Part shown: positions 4,533 through 21,735 of the stretch, piece after piece
Position numbering within the stretch: position 1 is the stretch's first letter
How the letters are laid out: each line of letters begins with the position of its first letter
NCBI GenBank assembly: GCA_047495785.1
Contig: JBLDXI010000016.1
Span: 868,001 to 932,000, forward strand
Length of the DNA stretch: 64,000 bases
Reading direction: 5' to 3'
Source of the DNA: Lepidodermella squamata
Lineage: Eukaryota > Animalia > Gastrotricha
Program-made: the position numbers and the translations under genes
The notes under the pieces: generated by a model
What the model was told of the DNA's origin: nothing
The model's input: the letters and a program-made list of their open reading frames with translations, nothing else
Databases searched by the model: none

Positions 4533-5623
4533 TTATACATGCTGAGCAGAGTTTAGATTCATGTTTGTTGGAGTTATCGTTGCCACACTAACCACCCCGG
4601 CCCCTACAGGAGCTGCTGCTGATGGTTTGCACAATGCTGTAGAAGCCGTGTGGCCCTCGGGGTATATGACTATTTGAGGGGGCGGCAGATTTTGTTGCTG
4701 CTCAGAACCGGACGAGCCTTCACAGAACCGCTGACCAGGCGGCCGTCGGTCTTGAATGTAGATGATTCGATTGTAAGTTCGCCACCTTCGACACAGCCTT
4801 ATGTACATTTTGCATTGCACATACATGAAAACAACCCCTGAAGAAAACCAGGCATGACAAATTATGACGAATATTCAATTTGCAACTTACCGCCAGTAAA
4901 ACCAACGGTTACAACCACCAATTTAGTCCAAAACGCCCAGCCATAATTTTTGCGATTGACCTCTTCAGCTGTTCTTTCCAGTAGCACCCAAAGAGACCAA
5001 ACCACGCAAATTAAGGCGACAATGTGGAAAGAAACAGAGCAGATGACTCGTCGACGCTCAACAGATGACAGATCCAGCTTACGCCATTTAGAAAATGGTT
5101 TACTCTCAGATGACATGATAAACTGGAACCGGCACAACTCGCAAGCTCGGGTCGACGATTCTAGGATCCACTTTTGAAGGCACGGGTGGTGGACAAATCG
5201 TAGAGAACCAGCACAAAGACATGGTTGTATCAAAGGGTGGTTTGTATCTCCCTCACTGTGGCATATCCGGCAGATATCTCCTGTAGCGCCGTCCAGCATT
5301 ACGTTGACACTGCTCGTATCTGTCACACTTTCACGAGGGACAGAAGGCGTCCGTAGCGATGCTAGACCACTGTCATCTTGATTGGCTGAGCCTGAGCAGA
5401 TATTAGAACGCAATGGAGAGACGTTTGAAGAGTCCGCTGAGACGTCGCCATGCATCGAAGGGGTAGGAGGAGCAGGAACAGGGGAAATCCCCGTACCCTT
5501 GATTACTTTTGGCTCAGCACTGCTCCCATTGGACAGTGGTTGCTGGGAGTCTCTGAGAACGTTGGAGATACCAGAGTCTCTGGACGCATCGATACCACCA
5601 CTGCTGGGTGGATCGGAGTCCAT
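4533..5623 (-). CDS. MARCH1/8-type RING-CH membrane E3 ubiquitin ligase; exons 5623-4891, 4837-4533
   Basis: RINGv CRICH...[20 protein letters not shown]...CELC, two TM helices, [21 protein letters not shown]. Confidence 0.93.
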
Positions 5624-6889
5624 TTAAAAATCTACAATGTCAAAATTGAATTTTACACTTGAAAGAACTGCATTCTTGGGAGACGGCGTACTCTCAGATA
5701 ACGCTGAGCGAAGAAATTCAAATTCAATCGAAAACATGCTGCTCCACCGGGACAGGAACCGCAAGGCGTATATCTATCATACTAGGAATCTCGAGACTCG
5801 AGTTAGCAAGATAAAACAGCTAGACAGAGTTAGGTAGCAAGGTTATCTCTTATCAAGATAAGCTCATATAAGCGGATTCATTCGGAAATAATGGTTTCCG
5901 GGTTTCGGGTTCCGAGTTCACCTTGTCTTGAACCTTGAACCTCCGCCATGGACGATGGACATGCGGGGAAAATTTGATCACTAACCAATAATAAACATTC
6001 AACTCTGTTATCAAAGACCCAAGACCTATTGCTAGGAATGCACGACAGCTAGAGAAGAACAGAAAGCTGTTTGGGGCTCCCGAAATGAAAGTTTGACTTG
6101 TTCGTCAAAGAGGTAATACCCGCCACATGAACTAAAACTGGGTAAAGTATCGACCGAAAGGCAACTCTTACCTTTGCAGCTCAGCCCTTTATCCTGTCCT
6201 CGGGAACCCATAAAAGCACTTAATAAAGTCAAAACCATTATAGTAAATAAATTAAATGCCTAATTTATTTCTAAAATCCAGATTTAAACACGTTTTATAT
6301 TGACTAAATTGATTTAATTTCAAGGACTGGTTGCATGTGTTCGGGGAACTTGCGAGCTGTTTTTGAAGTTCTGCTCAGTGGAGCTTCCTTAGAGTCCGGT
6401 TACACTGCTAAGAACTTGTTGCTCTTAATGATTTGTAATCAGGAGAAGTCATAATGGATTGAAAACAGACATAAACAACAGCTTAAACAAAGCTCGCAAG
6501 TCACTGCAGATCATTTGAACAGAGCGTAAGGCCACGCTAGGCACCATCTCCGTTACCTTTTTTAGTGCAAGTGGTTGGTTTTTGTGCGAGTGAAGGTGCC
6601 ATTATGGACTAATTACTTCTTGATACTTAGTATTATTATATTATAATACCATTTTGATTTGCAAATCTTCATTACACGAATTCGCAGATATTTTCACTTG
6701 AGGTTTATTTCCTTGAAGAAGTTTGGAAATGGTCTGGATCCGTTAATCCTAAGGCTCCCGATGAAAACGTTTGTTTGAGGTGCACGGTTGAACTAATTCC
6801 GCTGGTGAAAAGGGTTATTTGGTCGTATTCGTGAATCCGCATTGCTTCATAAATTGGCCAACTCGATGATGCTTACCTAACGGAACCTA

Positions 6890-8340
6890 GCAGCGGGTTT
6901 TCATCAGCACCAACTTCCACTTATCCGAGAAGTCTCATCATTTGTTATGGATTGTTATAGACCAATACTAGTTGATAGAAACAAAAATTACATTTGCATC
7001 ACCTTCCGTTGGCGTGCTGCCAAATTTTGCTGCTAAGTTCAGCTTTTACTATGTAAAATGGGTGCATCGATTTTGGACCCCATTTGTTATATCTGACAGC
7101 AGCACATAACAAACGTGAGAATTTGTTATATAACGTAACAAATGACGCTGATTGCGATGGTGATTTTTATTTTACCATCAGCATCACCTGGACAGGTGTG
7201 GATCGAAAAAACCAGGTATGGTGGCTTACTACTAGCAGGTAGGGTGCGTCCCATGACCGATTGTTTTGTTTCCATAACCGTCGTAGCCGAATTTCCGAAT
7301 TTCCGAAATTGATGAGCAAGAAAAGTAAGAAACTCGAGGGCATACATCTTTGAAATAGAAATTAATTTTCGTATCAGAATAAACCATAGCACTTGCTGGT
7401 CTTAAGTATTCCAAAATTTAAGAGTATCAATAAACAAATTAAACAATGATTTCTCAAAGAAGGTAACGAATATTATTGACTTTCTCGCACGAAAAGGTCA
7501 TATTAACAGAATAAAATATTATAGGTAATTATAAAATCAACATCACCAACGTTTTCAGGGCTACTTTTTATCTTCTAGAATTAAAATTCCACATTTGTTA
7601 CGTTAGCGCTGTCAGTTAAAAAAATATCGTAATCTAATTCAATTCAGACCCATTTTAAATTTGAATAGCCAGCTACGAATCACGTGGTCAATTAACCGCC
7701 AAGCCGTCAATTATATTCGTTAGACAATAGAGATGTTAATTTCTGCATCATTTTTTACCCTAGTGCACTCATTTAAATGTGAAGTTAATGTAACATAATC
7801 CAAGCTTCCGCTGCCAAGCAAGTAATTTTCATTGCAAACTGCCATAATCGACATTGAAATTGCAACTTTAGTTAAACTCGCTTTTATTTCTCGAGTTATA
7901 TGAATCGAAAGTTCGCAATACTTTGTGAAACATGGTAATTTACCACGGAGAATCCGAAAAAATTTATCTCGAGGTCATGGGACGCACCCTACCTGCTCAG
8001 GTAAGCCACCATACCTGGTTTTTTCGATCCACACCTGTCCAGGTGATGCTGATGGTAAAATAAAAATCACCATCGCAATCAGCGTCATTTGTTACGTTAT
8101 ATAACAAATTCTCACGTTTGTTATGTGCTGCTGTCAGATATAACAAATGGGGTCCAAAATCGATGCACCCATTTTACATAGTAAAAGCTGAACTTAGCAG
8201 CAAAATTTGGCAGCACGCCAACGGAAGGTGATGCAAATGTAATTTTTGTTTCTATCAACTAGTATTGGTCTATAACAATCCATAACAAATGATGAGACTT
8301 CTCGGATAAGTGGAAGTTGGTGCTGATGAAAACACGCTGC
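6890..8340. repeat. Long inverted repeat (~370-bp arms 6890-7258 and 7973-8340, ~715-bp spacer); foldback or non-autonomous DNA element
   Basis: Arms are near-perfect reverse complements (e.g. tcatcagcaccaacttccacttatccgag / ctcggataagtggaagttggtgctgatga); no clear TSD or transposase ORF. Confidence 0.85.
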
Positions 8341-10210
8341 CAAGTTCAAAGCGGTTGATGCTTAGCCAAAGACTTCATGAATGGTGTTAACTTGGCAATT
8401 GGAAACTCGTGTTGGATACGTCATACGTATGGCTGACCGGAAAAGCCAGAAAATGGTTGGGATAGCTCTGATCGGTATCCTATAGTATCCGTTGCGTCCC
8501 ATTTTTAGCGCGGCTACGCACTAATGAATATGAAGTTGGACAATTGGCTTTTAAAAAATATTATCCATCTCGGATAAGAACCATTTTCTGCATTACTTTT
8601 TGTGAAAATGGCAGGATATAGGTAATTTATGGAAAATTGCAACAAGCCAGCAATGCAATACAAAAAGAAAACCAGGACATGAGACAACCATTGAAACTTT
8701 ACTTTTCAAAACTTGCAAACAAACTCACAAACACTTAACTCATGTTTTATACATAATTTATAATCCATATTTTTATATTAGGTGTAGCATTATATTATTA
8801 TTGACTTTGGATGCCGCTTATAGACAAAATAAATGCACACAGCGCATACTATTTGATAGATGTTACATCATTTCTCGCGTACATCGGCATTTCACGAGGA
8901 AAACCAGGCGCACTCGAATCTTAAAAGCGCGAATTACAGGTGTCTTCACACTGAGCCCACCGTAAACCACAGGTGCATATTCGCTATCATAGAAAAACTA
9001 GCTTGAATATCGTACAACGCCGTTTAGTGGAGAGAGAGATAGACAGCATAGCTTTGAAATTACGAAGAAGAAGAAATAGCCGTTAATTTGTTAGCTTATA
9101 CTTCAATTAGAAAACAGATCAAATTGAATTTTTTCTTTGCATGGAATATAGCAAGATGTTCATTTTATCAGACGATATTCATACATTATCATGGTCCACA
9201 AAGCACACGCCGCATGCTGCATTTCATCATGTACTTTGGGTGCTCTAACAACAGGCAATGGTCATGTTAACAGAGAGTAAAAATTCGGAATTGTTTTTCC
9301 CCTAGAAACTATAAGCTGAAGAAATCAAACAACATTCATCAATTTTTTCGACATATCGGCCCACCGCGAAATCAGCCGCATTTCGAAATTTCTTCATAGA
9401 ATGGGTTTCACGTCGAAAAGGCACCCATCACAAGTGTTCGACAAACAAAATGAACTAGCGCTAATTATCGAGGATTGGAAAAAATCGACAGGCATCACAA
9501 AAGCACAGGTCAGCCTGGTTTCAATTATAATGATGATAACATAAGAATCAATAGTCGCAACAATTCTCGCACCAGGTGAGAAGCAAGAAATAGAGCTAGA
9601 TATGGACGAAATTTTGAGTCAACTGAAAAAATACGCCGGTGGTGAGTCGCAGGGTTGAATTTTTGGTTATGACTCGACTACGGTGTCATTTTTAAAACAG
9701 GTTAAAGCGAAATGACTAAATCATGCGGCAAGAAGGAGACGATAGGTACGCTGGGATATATCTATTCAATAAAAGCAATCTTCTTTTTTTATTACGAAGG
9801 AATATAATGGAAAATTGTTTGTGCTGTGTTTGAAATACGTTGATATAAAAAATAATCTATCATTATTTCATTCAATATATATCATGATCGAGGAGGATAA
9901 TCGCGCGCTCGGGAAAAACATATTCATTTTTAATAAATAAATATAATAGAATAAATAGACGAATTTATTTGAGTGAAGTCACAAACTAATCTATTCTTAT
10001 GTTTCACACGCATGTTATGACGTCGCAAAACAGATCATCGTGCCGTCCATCGTTTGACACATTCATTCATTTTTGTATACAACAGCGTTGCAACGACGGA
10101 AAAAATAATAAATAAATAAATGAATAAGAACTTGACACATAGAGAGAGAGAAGAGAATAAGAGAGAGAGAGAAATTGACGTTAAGAAATGATGATTGTCC
10201 TTTGAAATAA

Positions 10211-12207
<1,997 letters not shown>

Positions 12208-12642
12208 CTAGAAAAACACAAAATTAACATTAAATCCCGAAATTTACAAAATTTAAGATTATAATTATTTTAAAATAAATGGATAGTGCTGAATTTCACC
12301 ATAATTCTTCTAGTTAAGGCTTCAAGAGAGAAAATTCCAGCTTCCAGGACTATATCGTGAGCATTTTTAGATCTCTTTGCTTCAATTTTGAAATCGGCTC
12401 AAAGATTAAAAGAAGCAATCGAACGTAAATTTTGACAGGCAACAAAACTAATATTTCAATTAAGTCATTTTCTCAATTCGACAGCCCAAGTTTAGAAACA
12501 GATAATTTTTGTAATTTCACGCTCAAATTTGTTCAATTCCTTTCTATATTAATAAAAATTATAAATTCCTTATTTTATCAAGGATTCCTCACAAAATCGG
12601 CAATATCACTTGTATAATAACAAGCCGCACGAACCCCTCAAT

Positions 12643-14300
12643 CATAGACAATGATGTAACAGATCGGACACTCACGCACTTGCCTGTTGTCGTTAAACCA
12701 TAAATTTTCACACTAATTTAAATGCATTGATTTAAAAGGTGGAAAAAGATGTACATCTCCAATTTTTTTTAAATTTTCATAGAAAGAATCTCCGTCTTTC
12801 AAGGATTCCAAAGATCAAAGGCTCATCGCGCGATTCGATGCCGTTGATTTTTAAATTGAAAAACAAAAATGTGCATTGAAATTTAGTTGTTGAGTCCTTT
12901 CAATTCATTTTTTTCGCGTGGCCACATGTTTCTTTCCTCTTAAAACACAAACACAGATGGCGCCATTTTGTACTTTTTTATTATTACACATTTTCGAGCA
13001 TGAAAAGCGAGAAAGCGAGTCAAAAATTTAATTAAATTAAATATTTCCAGGGTGGCTACATGTTCTGATTTTGAGCTGCTTTCCGTATTTTCATCGGCTG
13101 TTTCGTATCGAATTGGCGCATTCGAATTGGTGCTAGGAGTGTACCAGATTTTCTCGAATGATTGATCGCCGAGTTTTAATTATCGAAACGATAGGTCACC
13201 AATGATGGGCGAGTCAGACTAAAATGAAAAGAAATTACCAGCATTTTCTCCAAACCTTATTTTTCTTACCATATCGTGCCATCGTGGGTTCGAAAGCTGA
13301 AGCATTCAACTACGCGACATGGTGTTACAAGACTCGAGTCGCAGCGAATAGATAGAGCCCGAGCATTTCTTCCCCGATAAGGGGCAGCGAAGCTTCATTT
13401 TGCATGCCTTTCTGAAGCAATTAATTCTTGGAATTCAACTTCATCTCTGCTTTGCAAACTTTAAAAAGAAAATGAACATCATCAAACAAAATTCAATGTA
13501 AAAAGGCAGTTGTTTACAGGGTGCACGAAAAATTTCGATATAATTTTCTAATGAATTTCGTAATAATTTCTGAATTAGATCTCCGAGTTTTTTTTAATAA
13601 AAATCCTTATAAATTTATTTTAAAATGGCTCCGGAATTTATATTAATTTGAAATAATTCAAAATATTTTCGACCATAAAATAAATATTCGTATCTAAAAA
13701 TTATGAAAATTATGCACGGTAAAAAATGCTACAGTCATTATTAGGCTGGAAATATTAGGCGAACTTCTCAGGTTTTAAAGCTTTGAAAATGTCGAAAACT
13801 TACAGCCAAAAATATGAAATGTCACTGGTTTTTAAATGAAGGAGGATTCAAACTGTATAGTTGTCAGGTGGGATTTCTAAAGAAAGATTTCAAACAGAAA
13901 CCGATGATAATTTAAAAAATGTCCCCTGAGCTCTCGTGGCTCGTGCTAAAGGGTTGAATTTCAAGTGTGTTGTTGATTCCCATTTGCATTAAAATTTCTC
14001 ACCACAACTTGTTTTTTCTTCGAGTGAATAATGAGTCATGATTACGCAACACAGTTTTGCATGGTGCTAATAATCGATTTTTCGATATTGATTTTCTCGA
14101 CAACGAAGCCGAATCGCGCGACGGGGTTCGGTTTATTATGGCCGTAAAAAAATGCCCGATTTTCTGATATTTTTTTCAAGAATTTATGAGATGTACATAT
14201 TTTCGGCCGGATTTATAATGGCCGATCCACGGTACAAAGTTCATAATTAAATTTCAATGCGAAGTGTGTGAGTGTCCGATCTGTAACATTATTGTCTATG
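12643..14300. mobile_element. Non-autonomous P-superfamily-like DNA transposon, 1658 bp, with 39-bp imperfect TIRs
   Basis: Left end CATAGACAATGATGTAACAGATCGGACACTCACGCACTT (12643-12681); reverse complement of 14262-14300 is CATAGACAATAATGTTACAGATCGGACACTCACACACTT (3 mismatches); 8-bp TSD for this family seen at 18532/18571; no transposase ORF. Confidence 0.8.
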
Positions 14301-14433
14301 CTTTATGTATTTGCGCGCAATAGTGCTCTCAAGCCGATACCTGAAAGTCGTTTTGACATTATGCAGAATACATGAAATTAAAAGAGTGTGAGAAATTATA
14401 TCGGAGCTCCTCGTGGATGCCAATCGGAAAGAA

Positions 14434-14919
14434 TTACGATCTAAATAGTGAAAAGCAGTGAAGTGTCGATGTTTCCGAACAACTTGTGCGGTTAATCATG
14501 CCGCAAAAAAACTTCGGTACCGTTATCCATGGAACGGAGGCATACTCCGTAGCAAAAGAATTAAATAGAAAAACAATGACAGTTCCCAACACGATGCAGC
14601 CGAGTAGTATGGATAAAAATGTCATTATCAGCCCCCATGGAGTGTTAGAGGGTGTATTAGGATTGTTGGATAAGAGACATAGTCACCGCTCGTAACTGAT
14701 CAACATGAAGATCCAAATATAGATTGAGAACCCAGAGTTGTCATTACCCAGGCCAGCCCTGTGCATAACCAGGCTGGAGTGTCCCAGTAACCAGAACCAG
14801 CAGTTCTTCCGCCCAAATAGTGGACCCATCCAACAAAGAATGGTCTTGATTCGTTATAGCCTCGGTAGAACCCAGGCTTCGTTCATGTAAGCTCGGTTTG
14901 CAAATCTGGAGCTGTCCAT
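14434..14919 (-). pseudogene. Inverted copy of the class A GPCR pseudogene
   Basis: Mirror image of 17921-18406. Confidence 0.8.
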
Positions 14920-15583
14920 AGCTTGAGAATACAGGTATGATTTCGCCTCTCAATGCGAAGAGGATTTAGCTGATTTTTACTCGGTTGTGTTACTCACCGC
15001 GCGCGCCTTCCGCTTATTTGCTCATGCGTTGTGCGTTATGCGAATGCTCTTATTTTTCATTGAGTGGAATTCGGACGGATGCAAAACAGTCTACTTCTCA
15101 AGAGAGCATTTGCGCACGCCCAACAAAACTTAAATTGTCGAAAACATAATCAATATTCAACATTTTTCAAGTCTCAGTTTGCTTCATGGACTAATGCAGT
15201 TTTCTACCTACGCTCATCTGAAGACCGAAGACTGCTAATCGTGGATCGCTGCGCGCTGTAGACTCTAGATCCTAGATCGCCCGTAGCAACATGTTGATCT
15301 TGTATCATAGATTATGAACAGTTGCGGATTTCGAAGAGCAAGATTTCAGGCTGACCAGGAACGGTCTCCTAGACTTGCCCTCCTATGACACTGCACTGTG
15401 TACATTTATTTTATTCGAAACGTGCTTTAAAAAATAAGGAAAATGTTGTGTCATGTATTTGAAGAGCAATAAAAAGGGCCAGTTTCAGCAAGTTTACTTG
15501 TAGTTAGCTTTCGGTCCACCTGCGCCGGCTTCATAACGGCTGAAGATTCCGGTGAGTGCCATGGGTTTGGGTTGGGTCGCGAA

Positions 15584-17256
15584 CATAGACAATAATGTTA
15601 CAGATCGGACACTCACACACTTCGCATTGAAATTTAATTATGAACTTTGTACCGTGGATCGGCCATTATAAATCCGGCCGAAAATATGTACATCTCATAA
15701 ATTCTTGAAAAAAATATCAGAAAATCGGGCATTTTTTTACGGCCATAATAAACCGAACCCCGTCGCGCGATTCGGCTTCGTTGTCGAGAAAATCAATATC
15801 GAAAAATCGATTATTAGCACCATGCAAAACTGTGTTGCGTAATCATGACTCATTATTCACTCGAAGAAAAAACAAGTTGTGGTGAGAAATTTTAATGCAA
15901 ATGGGAATCAACAACACACTTGAAATTCAACCCTTCAGCACGAGCCACGAGAGCTCAGGGGACATTTTTTAAATTATCATCGGTTTCTGTTTGAAATCTT
16001 TCTTTAGAAATCCCACTGTTCTGATTTTGAGCTGCTTTCCGTATTTTCATCGGCTGTTTCGTATCGAATTGGCGCATTCGAATTGGTGCTAGGAGTGTAC
16101 CAGATTTTCTCGAATGATTGATCGCCGAGTTTTAATTATCGAAACGATAGGTCACCAATGATGGGCGAGTCAGACTAAAATGAAAAGAAATTACCAGCAT
16201 TTTCTCCAAACCTTATTTTTCTTACCATATCGTGCCATCGTGGGTTCGAAAGCTGAAGCATTCAACTACGCGACATGGTGTTACAAGACTCGAGTCGCAG
16301 CGAATAGATAGAGCCCGAGCATTTCTTCCCCGATAAGGGGCAGCGAAGCTTCATTTTGCATGCCTTTCTGAAGCAATTAATTCTTGGAATTCAACTTCAT
16401 CTCTGCTTTGCAAACTTTAAAAAGAAAATGAACATCATCAAACAAAATTCAATGTAAAAAGGCAGTTGTTTACAGGGTGCACGAAAAATTTCGATATAAT
16501 TTTCTAATGAATTTCGTAATAATTTCTGAATTAGATCTCCGAGTTTTTTTTAATAAAAATCCTTATAAATTTATTTTAAAATGGCTCCGGAATTTATATT
16601 AATTTGAAATAATTCAAAATATTTTCGACCATAAAATAAATATTCGTATCTAAAAATTATGAAAATTATGCACGGTAAAAAATGCTACAGTCATTATTAG
16701 GCTGGAAATATTAGGCGAACTTCTCAGGTTTTAAAGCTTTGAAAATGTCGAAAACTTACAGCCAAAAATATGAAATGTCACTGGTTTTTAAATGAAGGAG
16801 GATTCAAACTGTATAGTTGTCAGGTGGGATTTCTAAAGAAAGATTTCAAACAGAAACCGATGATAATTTAAAAAATGTCCCCTGAGCTCTCGTGGCTCGT
16901 GCTAAAGGGTTGAATTTCAAGTGTGTTGTTGATTCCCATTTGCATTAAAATTTCTCACCACAACTTGTTTTTTCTTCGAGTGAATAATGAGTCATGATTA
17001 CGCAACACAGTTTTGCATGGTGCTAATAATCGATTTTTCGATATTGATTTTCTCGACAACGAAGCCGAATCGCGCGACGGGGTTCGGTTTATTATGGCCG
17101 TAAAAAAATGCCCGATTTTCTGATATTTTTTTCAAGAATTTATGAGATGTACATATTTTCGGCCGGATTTATAATGGCCGATCCACGGTACAAAGTTCAT
17201 AATTAAATTTCAATGCGAAGTGTGTGAGTGTCCGATCTGTAACATTATTGTCTATG
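15584..17256. mobile_element. Rearranged derivative of the P-like element carrying two right ends
   Basis: Starts CATAGACAATAATGTTACA (right-type TIR), 433 bp of inverted right end joined to internal sequence from 13061, ends in right TIR ...TTATTGTCTATG. Confidence 0.75.
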
Positions 17257-17920
17257 TTCGCGACCCAACCCAAACCCATGGCACTCACCGGAATCTTCAG
17301 CCGTTATGAAGCCGGCGCAGGTGGACCGAAAGCTAACTACAAGTAAACTTGCTGAAACTGGCCCTTTTTATTGCTCTTCAAATACATGACACAACATTTT
17401 CCTTATTTTTTAAAGCACGTTTCGAATAAAATAAATGTACACAGTGCAGTGTCATAGGAGGGCAAGTCTAGGAGACCGTTCCTGGTCAGCCTGAAATCTT
17501 GCTCTTCGAAATCCGCAACTGTTCATAATCTATGATACAAGATCAACATGTTGCTACGGGCGATCTAGGATCTAGAGTCTACAGCGCGCAGCGATCCACG
17601 ATTAGCAGTCTTCGGTCTTCAGATGAGCGTAGGTAGAAAACTGCATTAGTCCATGAAGCAAACTGAGACTTGAAAAATGTTGAATATTGATTATGTTTTC
17701 GACAATTTAAGTTTTGTTGGGCGTGCGCAAATGCTCTCTTGAGAAGTAGACTGTTTTGCATCCGTCCGAATTCCACTCAATGAAAAATAAGAGCATTCGC
17801 ATAACGCACAACGCATGAGCAAATAAGCGGAAGGCGCGCGCGGTGAGTAACACAACCGAGTAAAAATCAGCTAAATCCTCTTCGCATTGAGAGGCGAAAT
17901 CATACCTGTATTCTCAAGCT

Positions 17921-18406
17921 ATGGACAGCTCCAGATTTGCAAACCGAGCTTACATGAACGAAGCCTGGGTTCTACCGAGGCTATAACGAATCAAGACCAT
18001 TCTTTGTTGGATGGGTCCACTATTTGGGCGGAAGAACTGCTGGTTCTGGTTACTGGGACACTCCAGCCTGGTTATGCACAGGGCTGGCCTGGGTAATGAC
18101 AACTCTGGGTTCTCAATCTATATTTGGATCTTCATGTTGATCAGTTACGAGCGGTGACTATGTCTCTTATCCAACAATCCTAATACACCCTCTAACACTC
18201 CATGGGGGCTGATAATGACATTTTTATCCATACTACTCGGCTGCATCGTGTTGGGAACTGTCATTGTTTTTCTATTTAATTCTTTTGCTACGGAGTATGC
18301 CTCCGTTCCATGGATAACGGTACCGAAGTTTTTTTGCGGCATGATTAACCGCACAAGTTGTTCGGAAACATCGACACTTCACTGCTTTTCACTATTTAGA
18401 TCGTAA
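17921..18406 (+). pseudogene. Internally deleted, frameshifted paralogue of the GPCR at 20536
   Basis: atggacagctcc...gcttacatgaacgaagcctgggttct...gaatcaagaccattctttgttggatgg and tggatcttcatgttgatcagttacgagcg align to 20536-21200 with deletions and stops. Confidence 0.85.
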
Positions 18407-18531
18407 TTCTTTCCGATTGGCATCCACGAGGAGCTCCGATATAATTTCTCACACTCTTTTAATTTCATGTATTCTGCATAATGTCAAAACGACTTTCAGG
18501 TATCGGCTTGAGAGCACTATTGCGCGCAAAT

Positions 18532-18578
18532 ACATAAAGCATAGACAATAATGTTACATCATTGTCTATGACATAAAG
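18532..18578. mobile_element. Transposon excision footprint: 8-bp TSD ACATAAAG + 31-bp fused TIR ends + ACATAAAG
   Basis: ACATAAAG|CATAGACAATAATGTTACATCATTGTCTATG|ACATAAAG; first half is the right-type TIR, second half the left-type TIR. Confidence 0.9.
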
Positions 18579-18917
18579 TTAATTTTATTTTAACGGGATG
18601 CTCGGATCCACAGTCATTTACAGCAAATGCTATTTTTACCCGATCGCAGTAGTTTGCCGCGTGACAACATTTACTTTTTCCGTGTAATTGGAATTTTCGT
18701 GTATTAAACCTCTGATTTGGCTAATTATAGAAAAATAGCCCGATTTAATGACGTATTCTATTACACGAGCGCCTTGTAAATAAGCTTGAATCTGCAAATA
18801 AACCCGAATGCAAATAAAATCAGTGGATATTTAACTTCTACGAAATACATTATTTTGAGATTAAACTTGAAATAACTTTGCGCTAAGACTGATGTGAATT
18901 ATTCGCAAAGTTCTTCA

Positions 18918-20057
18918 ATGAAGCTTTACTACAGCCTCATTTGTGCGCTCTTCAACGCGGAATGTGCGCTTGCTCGAAACCCAAACTGGAACATTTCAAG
19001 ACTTCACTCTCTCATACAAACGCGCCGAGATAATGCCCACGTGACAGGACGCGACCCGCCAAAATTGAATGAACGGGATGTGATATCCCTAAACTTTACA
19101 TTTCGAGCGCTGGTTTTCATTTCTTTGGATGAGATAGGCGAAACACTCACAATTCTGCCAGATTTCCAACTCAAATGGCAGGATCCGTTCTCGAAATGGG
19201 ACGACATCAAAGACTTTGAAGCTATCACTGAGCTAGCTATGAACCCACGAAGCAACTGGGTGCCTAAGCTTCTACATATGAACAACGCCGAAGACATTTA
19301 TACAACGGTGAAATACGAACAAGACCTTGATTCGATCCACTTGTGGCGTGATGGGGTTGTCCTATTCTACCCACCTGTGCCAGCAATTACAACAGTTTGC
19401 CCGCTTGACTTTCTCCGCTTCCCTTTCGATGAGCAGACTTGCAATTTCAAATTCGGCTTCATGGAGTCATGTGCTGACGTTGAACTCGGCAATATAGCTA
19501 TTCTGGTTGGTATTCCATGGAAGAAAATCGAGTTCTCATCGGAAAGCTCACAGTGGTACGTGATTGATAGTCGAGCGATTCTGAATAGGAAGTGCGGCGC
19601 GTTTAACGAGGCAGCCCAATTCAGCATCACCCTCAAACGCCGCCCGTTACAGTTCATTTACAAAGCAGTAATTCCCATGGCTTTTCTGATGCTGCTCCAG
19701 TTAGCAACCTTCGGAATTCCGGCTAGTGCCTCGGACCGGTCCGCTTATGCAATGACTTGCCAACTAGCGTTGGGGGTTCTTCAAACAAACATAGATAGCA
19801 AATTGCCAACAACTTCGCAGCTGAGCTACATTTGCATAATTTTCACTATTCAACTCGGCATTGCGACTGTCATCACAGTTTATGCCTCAATTTCCTGCTA
19901 TGTCTACAACAACTTGATAAAGAAGTGTCACAAGCAGGACCGTAAGCTGTTTCTGATTAGAGCCGTCAACATCAGCGATGCGGCGTGCTTTTCTTTCTGT
20001 GCTCTAGTCATTATAGCTTCGTCCGCTATATACATCGCGAAAATGCAAACTGATTGA
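18918..20057 (+). CDS. Intronless Cys-loop ligand-gated ion channel subunit (divergent nAChR/5-HT3-like)
   Basis: Signal peptide, WQDP, WVPKL, Cys-loop CPLDFLRFPFDEQTC, LKRRP followed by four TM segments. Confidence 0.9.
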   Translation: MKLYYSLICALFNAECALARNPNWNISRLHSLIQTRRDNAHVTGRDPPKLNERDVISLNFTFRALVFISLDEIGETLTILPDFQLKWQDPFSKWDDIKDFEAITELAMNPRSNWVPKLLHMNNAEDIYTTVKYEQDLDSIHLWRDGVVLFYPPVPAITTVCPLDFLRFPFDEQTCNFKFGFMESCADVELGNIAILVGIPWKKIEFSSESSQWYVIDSRAILNRKCGAFNEAAQFSITLKRRPLQFIYKAVIPMAFLMLLQLATFGIPASASDRSAYAMTCQLALGVLQTNIDSKLPTTSQLSYICIIFTIQLGIATVITVYASISCYVYNNLIKKCHKQDRKLFLIRAVNISDAACFSFCALVIIASSAIYIAKMQTD

Positions 20058-20535: not shown

Positions 20536-21735
20536 ATGAGCAGCCTTAGCTTTGAGAAGCGTGCTTACATAAATGAAGCATGGGTTCTTGCTTCGAGCTC
20601 CAGACGGGGCTATAATGAATCGAGACCATTCTTCGTCGGATGGTTCCACGATTTAGGCGGACGGACTATAGAGGAACGCGCTATGTTCCCGATAATCTAC
20701 CTCGTCGTGACCATCCTCGTGATTGCGACGAGCTTTGTGAACGTGGTTACTTACTACAAGCGCAAAGTCCGCCGTGATTTCTTTGTTCTAACCGCGATTC
20801 TTGCTGCTGTGTCGATATTTCACGCTGTTGGGATATGTATAGCCCTGTGGATACCTGTTCGAAGTGGTTATTGGGAAGCCCCAAGTTGGTTATGTCCCGG
20901 AATTTCTCTGGTCATGTCAACTCTGGGCTGTCAATCAACTTGGATCTTCATGCTTATCAGCTACGAGCGCCGCATATGTCTCTTATCCAACAATTCTCAT
21001 ACAACGGCAAATACTAGAAAGGTTACGGTGATGGCATTTCTATCTATCCTGTTAGGCTTCATCGTGTTTGGCACTGTCACGTTTTATCCATTCGATAGTG
21101 CTACGGCAGAGTATGCTGCAGTCCCGTGGATAGCTAACGGTACCGAAGTTTTGTTTTGCGGCGTATTTACCCACAAGCTTATCGGAAACATCGACACATC
21201 ACTACTGCTTGTCATTTACTTTGCAATGCTTTCTGTAGTCATTCCTAATAACGTAATTGCATTTAATTATTGGTGAGTATTCAAATAACTGGAGCCATGT
21301 AAATCAATTATATTTCTTTACAGGCAAATATTCCGCAAGTTTCGGGCTTTCAAGAATGATTTGATCTCAAAGAACAGAACTGGGACGGTATCACCAAGCT
21401 TGAGTTCAATTGTTCGTCCTCAAGCCCTTTTGGCTAACTGGCAGCGGCTTGAAATGTTCTACATGTACCAGTCGTTGGTGTCCTTTGGGGCTTTCTCACT
21501 TTTCCACATTCCGCTAACGTTTAGTTTGATCTGCCTACTACTCTGGAACGGCGCTGGGCCAGATTACCTATCATCAACAGCTCATCAGATGTGTTTTCTG
21601 GCTTACTCGATCGAGATGGCTATTGCGCCTGTTATCCAGTGTTTGAAACCTAGCTTTATCGATGATCTAAAACGTCTTTTCAAGATGCTTCGCTGCCGCA
21701 AGACAACCGTTTTCCCGTTCTTACACCGTACATGA
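20536..21735 (+). CDS. Class A GPCR, FFAR4/GPR120-like orphan; exons 20536-21272, 21324-21735
   Basis: Seven hydrophobic segments, TM3 Cys and ISYERR (DRY variant), TM5 IP...FNYW, TM6 FHIP. Confidence 0.8.

Follow-up and report, generated by a model that had tools for sequence, protein, structure and literature searches.

A probable excision scar of a P-type element and its genome-wide counterparts in the gastrotrich Lepidodermella squamata

P-superfamily elements and the 31-bp unit in the gastrotrich window

In Drosophila melanogaster, P transposase cleaves the 3′ strand right at the end of the element and the 5′ strand 17 nt further in, leaving 17-nt 3′ extensions; insertion creates 8-bp duplications, and end joining or homologous repair closes the donor break (PMC7776569, PMC10983969). 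P-like elements are already known outside insects as zebrafish Pdre2 and vertebrate THAP9, which belong to the same superfamily and show 8-bp duplications and internally deleted copies (PMC7776569, PMC10983969). Also known are the rearrangements marked by exchanged target-site duplications (TSDs) of Galileo, a P-superfamily element of Drosophila buzzatii (PMC2775673). No other feature of P transposition is as odd as this 17-nt staggered cut, and to our knowledge its biochemical mapping is confined to the Drosophila enzyme.

Here we analysed a 64-kb stretch of L. squamata DNA (the window) in which 47 bp at 18532–18578 read directly as the 8-mer ACATAAAG, a 31-bp near-palindrome and ACATAAAG again. 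The two 8-bp TSD copies (18532–18539 and 18571–18578, plus strand) enclose a tip-to-tip fusion (18540–18570, plus strand), to which the inverted right and left tips of the element at 12643–14300 contribute at most 19 nt each. In the 31-mer, the initial 19 nt match the inverted right tip (A at position 11), and the final 19 nt match the inverted left tip (G at position 11). The halves have 7 nt in common (TGTTACA), and at positions 13–19 the right tip of the element reads TGTTACA while the left tip carries TGTAACA. An earlier note on this DNA had described a near-palindrome with diagnostic bases at position 11 inside an 8-bp TSD, and the match to both element tips confirms that description. The window contains six occurrences of the 15-nt tip motif, where 0.23 are expected from shuffles, and none of 100 shuffles reached six. 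We consider it very probable that 18532–18578 is a genuine scar from the cut-out of a recently active P-type element. The window also holds an inverted repeat of 347 nt at 6883–7229 and 8001–8347, with 99% complementarity, a 771-nt spacer and no obvious TSD. No part of the window resembled human DNA.

The left flank of the scar (17257–18539, 1283 bp) is present a second time as a 100% identical inverted copy at 14301–15583. At the junction 14300/14301, the intact right tip of the element adjoins ctttatgt, the reverse complement of ACATAAAG. This flank joined to an element right end thus represents the occupied state of the scar site in the same window, and the orientation of the element at the junction is that predicted by the scar. 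The scar sits in a 100%-identical fold-back, and the link between occupied and excised states may reflect two alleles rather than one molecule. When the assembly was searched for another haplotype of this site, only the window itself and paralogues of 73–87% identity came up. Among these, the contig 7 paralogue (80–87% identical) reads through the site without the 31 bp and without a second ACATAAAG, and represents a paralogous empty site. The scar lies ~320 bp upstream of a Cys-loop receptor open reading frame (18894–20057, plus strand) that was recognised by its neurotransmitter-gated ion-channel ligand-binding domain. Paralogous, partly tandem Cys-loop ligand-gated channel genes occur in the window (18894–20057 and 20536–21703) and on contigs 7, 12, 15 and 32; the scar and a second insertion site, ttcgcgac, are located in or between units of this gene family.

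The gastrotrich family shares with Drosophila P (6p5a/6pe2) an 8-bp TSD, tips starting with CAT and a transposase in which a GTP-binding insertion domain interrupts the RNase H fold. Further points in common are non-autonomous copies with internal deletions, local hopping and aberrant transposition involving two elements, and the donor scars probably resemble those of Drosophila P in retaining up to ~17 nt of each inverted repeat. The two differ in host, Drosophila being an insect, and in sequence, to which the gastrotrich transposase is only distantly related (E = 3e-9 over the core) and in which no THAP domain was detected. The terminal inverted repeats (TIRs) of Drosophila P are 31 bp and perfect, whereas those of the gastrotrich family span ~39 nt at 95% identity. 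Unlike those of Drosophila P, the gastrotrich tips are asymmetric at positions 11, 15 and 16, so that the overhang ends can pair and the scar is almost invariant. THAP9 proteins differ in having a THAP domain, and zebrafish THAP9 showed excision but no integration, with repair products in cells that had larger flanking deletions, whereas the gastrotrich genome contains many clean scars and fresh insertions.

Full copies and the encoded transposase

The TIRs of the family measure 39 nt with 95% identity. The 23 full copies examined range from 1.4 to 4.3 kb; perfect 8-bp TSDs flank 15 of them, and six of the eight with mismatched flanks belong to partner-swap sets. Five copies of 4.27–4.28 kb contain a long open reading frame encoding a P-type core, with a split RNase H fold and a GTP-binding insertion domain. 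When the transposase exons were scanned separately against Pfam, L055:1504–2907 matched PF21788 (E = 1.4e-26), PF21787 (3e-14) and PF21789 (3e-5, at the curated cut-off), and L051 gave the same result. The sole match to a solved structure was Drosophila P transposase (PDB 6p5a, E = 3e-9), covering the D...H..KL.R and QD..E motifs. Four of these five copies are mutually 99.93–99.98% identical; the fifth, on contig 15, shares its exact tips with the window element, to whose ends it is only ~86% identical. The 1.6–2.1-kb copies correspond to the 4.28-kb copy minus internal segments, at 98–100% identity. With copies that are 99.9–100% identical, and with occupied and excised states at identical flanks, the family looks currently active, which supports the recent activity that the earlier note had proposed.

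A THAP domain was not found in any open reading frame of the 5′ part by Pfam at E values up to 5, nor was the THAP C2CH pattern present in six frames of two subfamilies. A THAP domain, if present, may be split over small exons. The sole conserved coding block in the 5′ part starts at L055:619 and opens with a helical region poor in cysteine, after which comes a long helix resembling the leucine zipper of P transposase. An AlphaFold model of the N-terminal exon, built from a two-sequence alignment, had a mean pLDDT of 53 and was helical overall, with only a long helix (residues 143–197) predicted confidently.

The other family with 8-bp duplications, hAT, leaves scars of flank-derived palindromic bases without tip sequence. 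The Pfam scan gave no hAT domain on any open reading frame, and the scars here consist of tip sequence rather than flank-derived palindromic bases; the hAT superfamily was rejected on both grounds, and the tips bracket a P-type transposase, in agreement with the earlier note's assignment. That note had called the enzyme a P/THAP-type transposase: the P-type catalytic core stands, given the matches to PF21787, PF21788, PF21789 and 6p5a, whereas the THAP part of the label does not, as no such domain was detected. Judged from sequence, the elements are members of the P superfamily by their catalytic core, their 8-bp TSD and their TIRs with internal-deletion derivatives. GTP-dependent cleavage and strand transfer are predicted from the presence of the GTP-binding domain.

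A stereotyped scar series and the geometry of the cut

Genome-wide, the tips gave ~100 matches, against 0 for a control pattern, in the assembly of 121.2 Mb and 151 contigs that was searched. Two exact 10-nt tip ends lying 0–30 nt apart defined 20 tip-to-tip fusions across the whole assembly, comprising 15 of 31 bp, two of 32 bp and one each of 30, 25 and 39 bp. In the 40–110 bp range (tip ends 31–90 nt apart), the sole match was a 60-bp compound scar (contig 20:3201529–3201588), in which a 13-nt tip, 16 nt of filler and a 31-bp unit lie inside the duplication CTAACCAC. The next size class above the scars begins at ~1.4 kb. Perfect 8-bp TSDs border 14 of the 20 scars, all of them distinct and with unrelated flanks; the six exceptions are two with one or two substitutions, the compound scar and three in rearrangements. 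Three more 31-bp units with a mutated tip also lie in 8-bp duplications, two perfect and one matching at 7/8. Neither tip is kept over 20 nt or more in any scar, and retention is at most 17 nt where it can be read unambiguously. The 8-bp TSD of the earlier note recurs through the genome, and footprint lengths cluster as that note had required, with no duplication longer than 8 bp among full copies or scars, a tight cluster at 31 bp and no tip beyond 19 nt; each refuting condition that the note had named turned out in its favour. One scar (contig 16:655677) sits in one arm of a hairpin-like inverted repeat of 340 bp (contig 16:655636–655975), the other arm of which shows the site unfilled, with the 8-mer present once and differing at one base.

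We propose that an element of the 12643–14300 subfamily inserted at ACATAAAG with its right end towards the left flank, duplicating 8 bp, and that a P-type transposase, presumably encoded by one of the 4.27–4.28-kb relatives elsewhere, later excised it. The transferred strand would be cut at the element boundary and the other strand probably ~17 nt inside the element, leaving each flank with a 3′ overhang of tip sequence. With the tips differing at position 16 (A versus T), the overhang ends would be complementary, over 3 nt for 17-nt overhangs and over up to 7 nt for longer ones. The overhangs could then anneal in one register and be sealed by a putative repair pathway, giving the stereotyped 31-bp scar within the duplication. 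The element probably reinserted 1283 bp away in a local hop.

In the window subfamily, the last 3 bases of 17-nt overhangs would pair fully (TTA/TAA), and 17 + 17 − 3 = 31, in line with the earlier suggestion that tip asymmetry makes the overhangs complementary. In the major subfamily, two of the three bases would pair, the unpaired one being the 3′-terminal base of the left overhang. At this mismatched position, major-type scars carry the right-tip base in nine cases and the left-tip base in two, a split that is not significant and whose direction fits that expected if a mismatched 3′ end is trimmed. The 32-bp scars are compatible with 17 + 15 or 16 + 16. Positions 13–19 of the two tips are mutually complementary (7/7, or 6/7 in the major subfamily), so that overhangs of 16–19 nt all give the same product and the stagger is bounded rather than fixed; given the 7-nt common core, each tip may have contributed 12 to 19 nt. 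A stagger of ~16–19 nt fits the sequence data, with 17 nt fitting best. The 17-nt value in the earlier note agrees with scar lengths and tip retention, as any value from 16 to 19 nt would, which is in keeping with that note's own caveat that a 7-nt overlap does not fix the overhang at 17.

A third subfamily has the same tip sequence, CATAGACAATAATACAAGATCGGAA, at both ends (contig 15:2047221–2053634, contig 60:432819–435064 and other sites), and its scars are irregular only, of 25 and 39 bp (n = 2). We looked in the 39-bp scar for retention of exactly 17 nt; it keeps 15 + 16 nt plus filler and does not fix the number. Identical tips accompanied by irregular scars fit the idea that pairing of the overhangs determines the product, and these two cases hint that tip asymmetry makes the scar uniform.

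Rearranged flanks, alternative readings and significance

Three sites share their flanks in exchanged combinations. The 4282-bp copy at contig 31:129719–134000 lies between actcaggc (x) and tctgaacc (z), the 1597-bp copy at contig 10:1928249–1929845 lies between tcaacgac (y) and actcaggc (x), and the 31-bp scar at contig 10:1773114–1773144, 155 kb from the 1597-bp copy, is flanked by the reverse complements of y and z, with its left tip on the z side and its right tip on the y side. Hybrid-element insertion is a process defined for P elements (PMC2775673 and references there), and all six half-junctions as well as the tip orientation fit such an event using the ends of two elements. By this reading, two elements would each have supplied one end, the first its left and the second its right, for a joint insertion at x, and the z and y flanks left behind would have been joined. 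With elements of unequal length and a third junction of just 31 bp, the set is not explained by misassembly. In Galileo, the inverted repeats are very long, the duplications measure 7 bp and inversions have been ascribed to ectopic recombination; in the gastrotrich set, by contrast, one scar connects the flanks of two different donors, which speaks for hybrid-element insertion.

In another arrangement, at contig 10:1357804–1364382, two scars enclose a host segment of 3.8 kb within a single 8-bp duplication, ACCCGGAC. In local positions of contig 10:1357004–1365400, the scars are at 801–831 and 4646–4677 and an element is at 5599–7379. The inner flanks of the segment are the reverse complements of the flanks of this single element, 0.9 kb away, which now occupies the former place of the segment. 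The configuration resembles a host fragment that two element ends had set free and that was then trapped in an excision gap, the two donor copies having collapsed into one. Such sets of mismatched flanks suggest that chromosomal rearrangements, too, are driven by the family. Five or six of ~22 scars are located 0.9–1.8 kb from a full copy of their own subfamily, where ~0.02 would be expected by chance, a proximity that agrees with the local hopping known for Drosophila P; apart from the window, these loci are free of a large inverted duplication.

These arrangements bear on the origin of the 31-bp unit. Were the unit a minimal mobile element (a micro-MITE), each 8-bp duplication would record insertion of the 31-mer instead of an excision, and both the high uniformity of the unit and the separate 8-bp duplication at each copy would be accounted for. 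However, the same site is also occupied by a full element against the same ACATAAAG 8-mer, and the unit at contig 10:1773114 has two different flanks with partners on two full elements, which is impossible by insertion and identifies it as a joint between donor ends. The 31- and 32-bp units that bracket the 3.8-kb host segment, the five or six units close to a full copy of their own subfamily, and the requirement of Drosophila P for internal transposase-binding sites beyond the tips (PMC7776569) likewise argue against a mobile 31-mer, which strikes us as a most unlikely origin. Transposase-free deletion, through slippage or microhomology repair between the 7-bp direct repeats (TGTAACA) located 12 nt inside both ends, predicts exactly the 31-bp sequence observed. 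Such deletion would nevertheless have had to occur in at least 17 independent events, with three tip variants, between one and the same repeat pair across 1.4–4.3 kb, while no other internal deletion endpoints fall at 40–110 bp. The repeat of the major subfamily is imperfect (6/7), yet the register is unchanged, and the 30-, 32- and 60-bp scars, with trimmed ends or filler, resemble end joining of broken ends; we therefore hold this route to be very improbable. The layout of 12 + 7 + 12, with 12-bp inverted arms and a 7-bp asymmetric core at both element ends, would also suit a recombinase target of the loxP or FRT kind, with entry and exit by site-specific recombination. Each unit, however, lies inside an 8-bp duplication of its own, paralogous empty sites lack the unit, scar variants of 25–39 bp occur, and the enzyme encoded by the elements is a DDE-type P transposase, with no tyrosine or serine recombinase alongside it, all of which makes a recombinase target extremely unlikely. 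Excision of a P-type element remains our preferred reading of the unit.

The structure of the fold-back at 12643–18570 is a separate matter. The window reads, in order, a left flank ending in ccctcaat, element E1, segment F, element E2, segment F′, the scar and the right flank. E1 (12643–14300, plus strand; left tip at 12643, right tip at 14300) is a non-autonomous element of 1658 bp of the same subfamily, with mismatched flanks (ccctcaat / ctttatgt); it is 100% identical to a copy at contig 32:644018–645675 and 99.88% identical to a copy on contig 24. F (14301–15583, minus strand) aligns as the 100% inverted copy of 17257–18539 and starts with ctttatgt against the right tip of E1. E2 (15584–17256, plus strand) has two right ends, in that a 433-nt inverted right end (15584–16016) is joined without microhomology at 16016/16017 to the right-hand 1240 bp of an element (16017–17256), and its flanks (gtcgcgaa / ttcgcgac) are mutual reverse complements. 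F′ (17257–18539, plus strand) is host DNA between E2 and the scar, and corresponds to the 3′ part and downstream spacer of a paralogous Cys-loop receptor gene unit. The flanks of the contig 32 copy, ttcgcgac and ccctcaat, are the missing partners of the window junctions at 12635–12642 and 17257–17264, and in the contig 7 paralogue the left flank of that copy and the start of F′ form one continuous ancestral sequence that was split at ttcgcgac. This continuity allows three normal insertion sites to be reconstructed, the halves of which are swap-connected across two contigs. The swap between the window and contig 32 reflects either a reciprocal exchange between loci or a wrong assembly path through identical copies. 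Single hybrid-element and fold-back events were considered for 12643–18570, and none reproduces all the junctions, 16016/16017 being left unexplained.

The fold-back may be the product of aberrant transposition or an artefact of assembly from amplified DNA. The published L. squamata assembly (122 Mb, 157 contigs) was made from multiple-displacement-amplified DNA, and its authors name inverted chimeras as a known risk (PMC11660948). With the scar taken as real, E1, the inverted duplication and E2 could have arisen from two alleles and an inverted multiple-displacement-amplification chimera placed in one contig. The arms are 100% identical over 1735 nt, the junction at 16016/16017 makes an inverted U-turn across an 807-nt gap and lacks microhomology, and E1 and the contig 32 copy have swapped flanks, all of which speaks for such an artefact. 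Against it, the reported HiFi reads of ~13 kb would span a 1.66-kb repeat (PMC11660948), and the swapped flanks elsewhere, which involve elements of different length and a 31-bp scar, go beyond misassembly and show that aberrant transposition does occur in this genome. We put the chance of an artefact somewhat short of even. Neither reading of the fold-back affects the scar itself.

More speculatively, the divergence of the tips at position 16, and in one subfamily at position 15 as well, may have evolved so that the donor overhangs pair, in a THAP-less and currently active P lineage that reshapes chromosomes through hybrid-element insertion; we regard this combined interpretation as rather unlikely. 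If the overhang-pairing part were true, excision would leave a programmed, nearly invariant 31-bp scar and a cleanly resealed chromosome. The host animal is reported to reproduce mostly without sex. In the published repeat annotation of L. squamata, most repeats are unclassified (PMC11660948). What is new here is an apparently active spiralian P family, a stereotyped natural scar series fitting a long stagger and a clean signature of hybrid-element insertion. A distant spiralian relative of Drosophila P thus offers a natural series of ~20 donor scars with lengths compatible with the geometry of a 17-nt cut, a footprint series that is directly comparable with cleavage assays.
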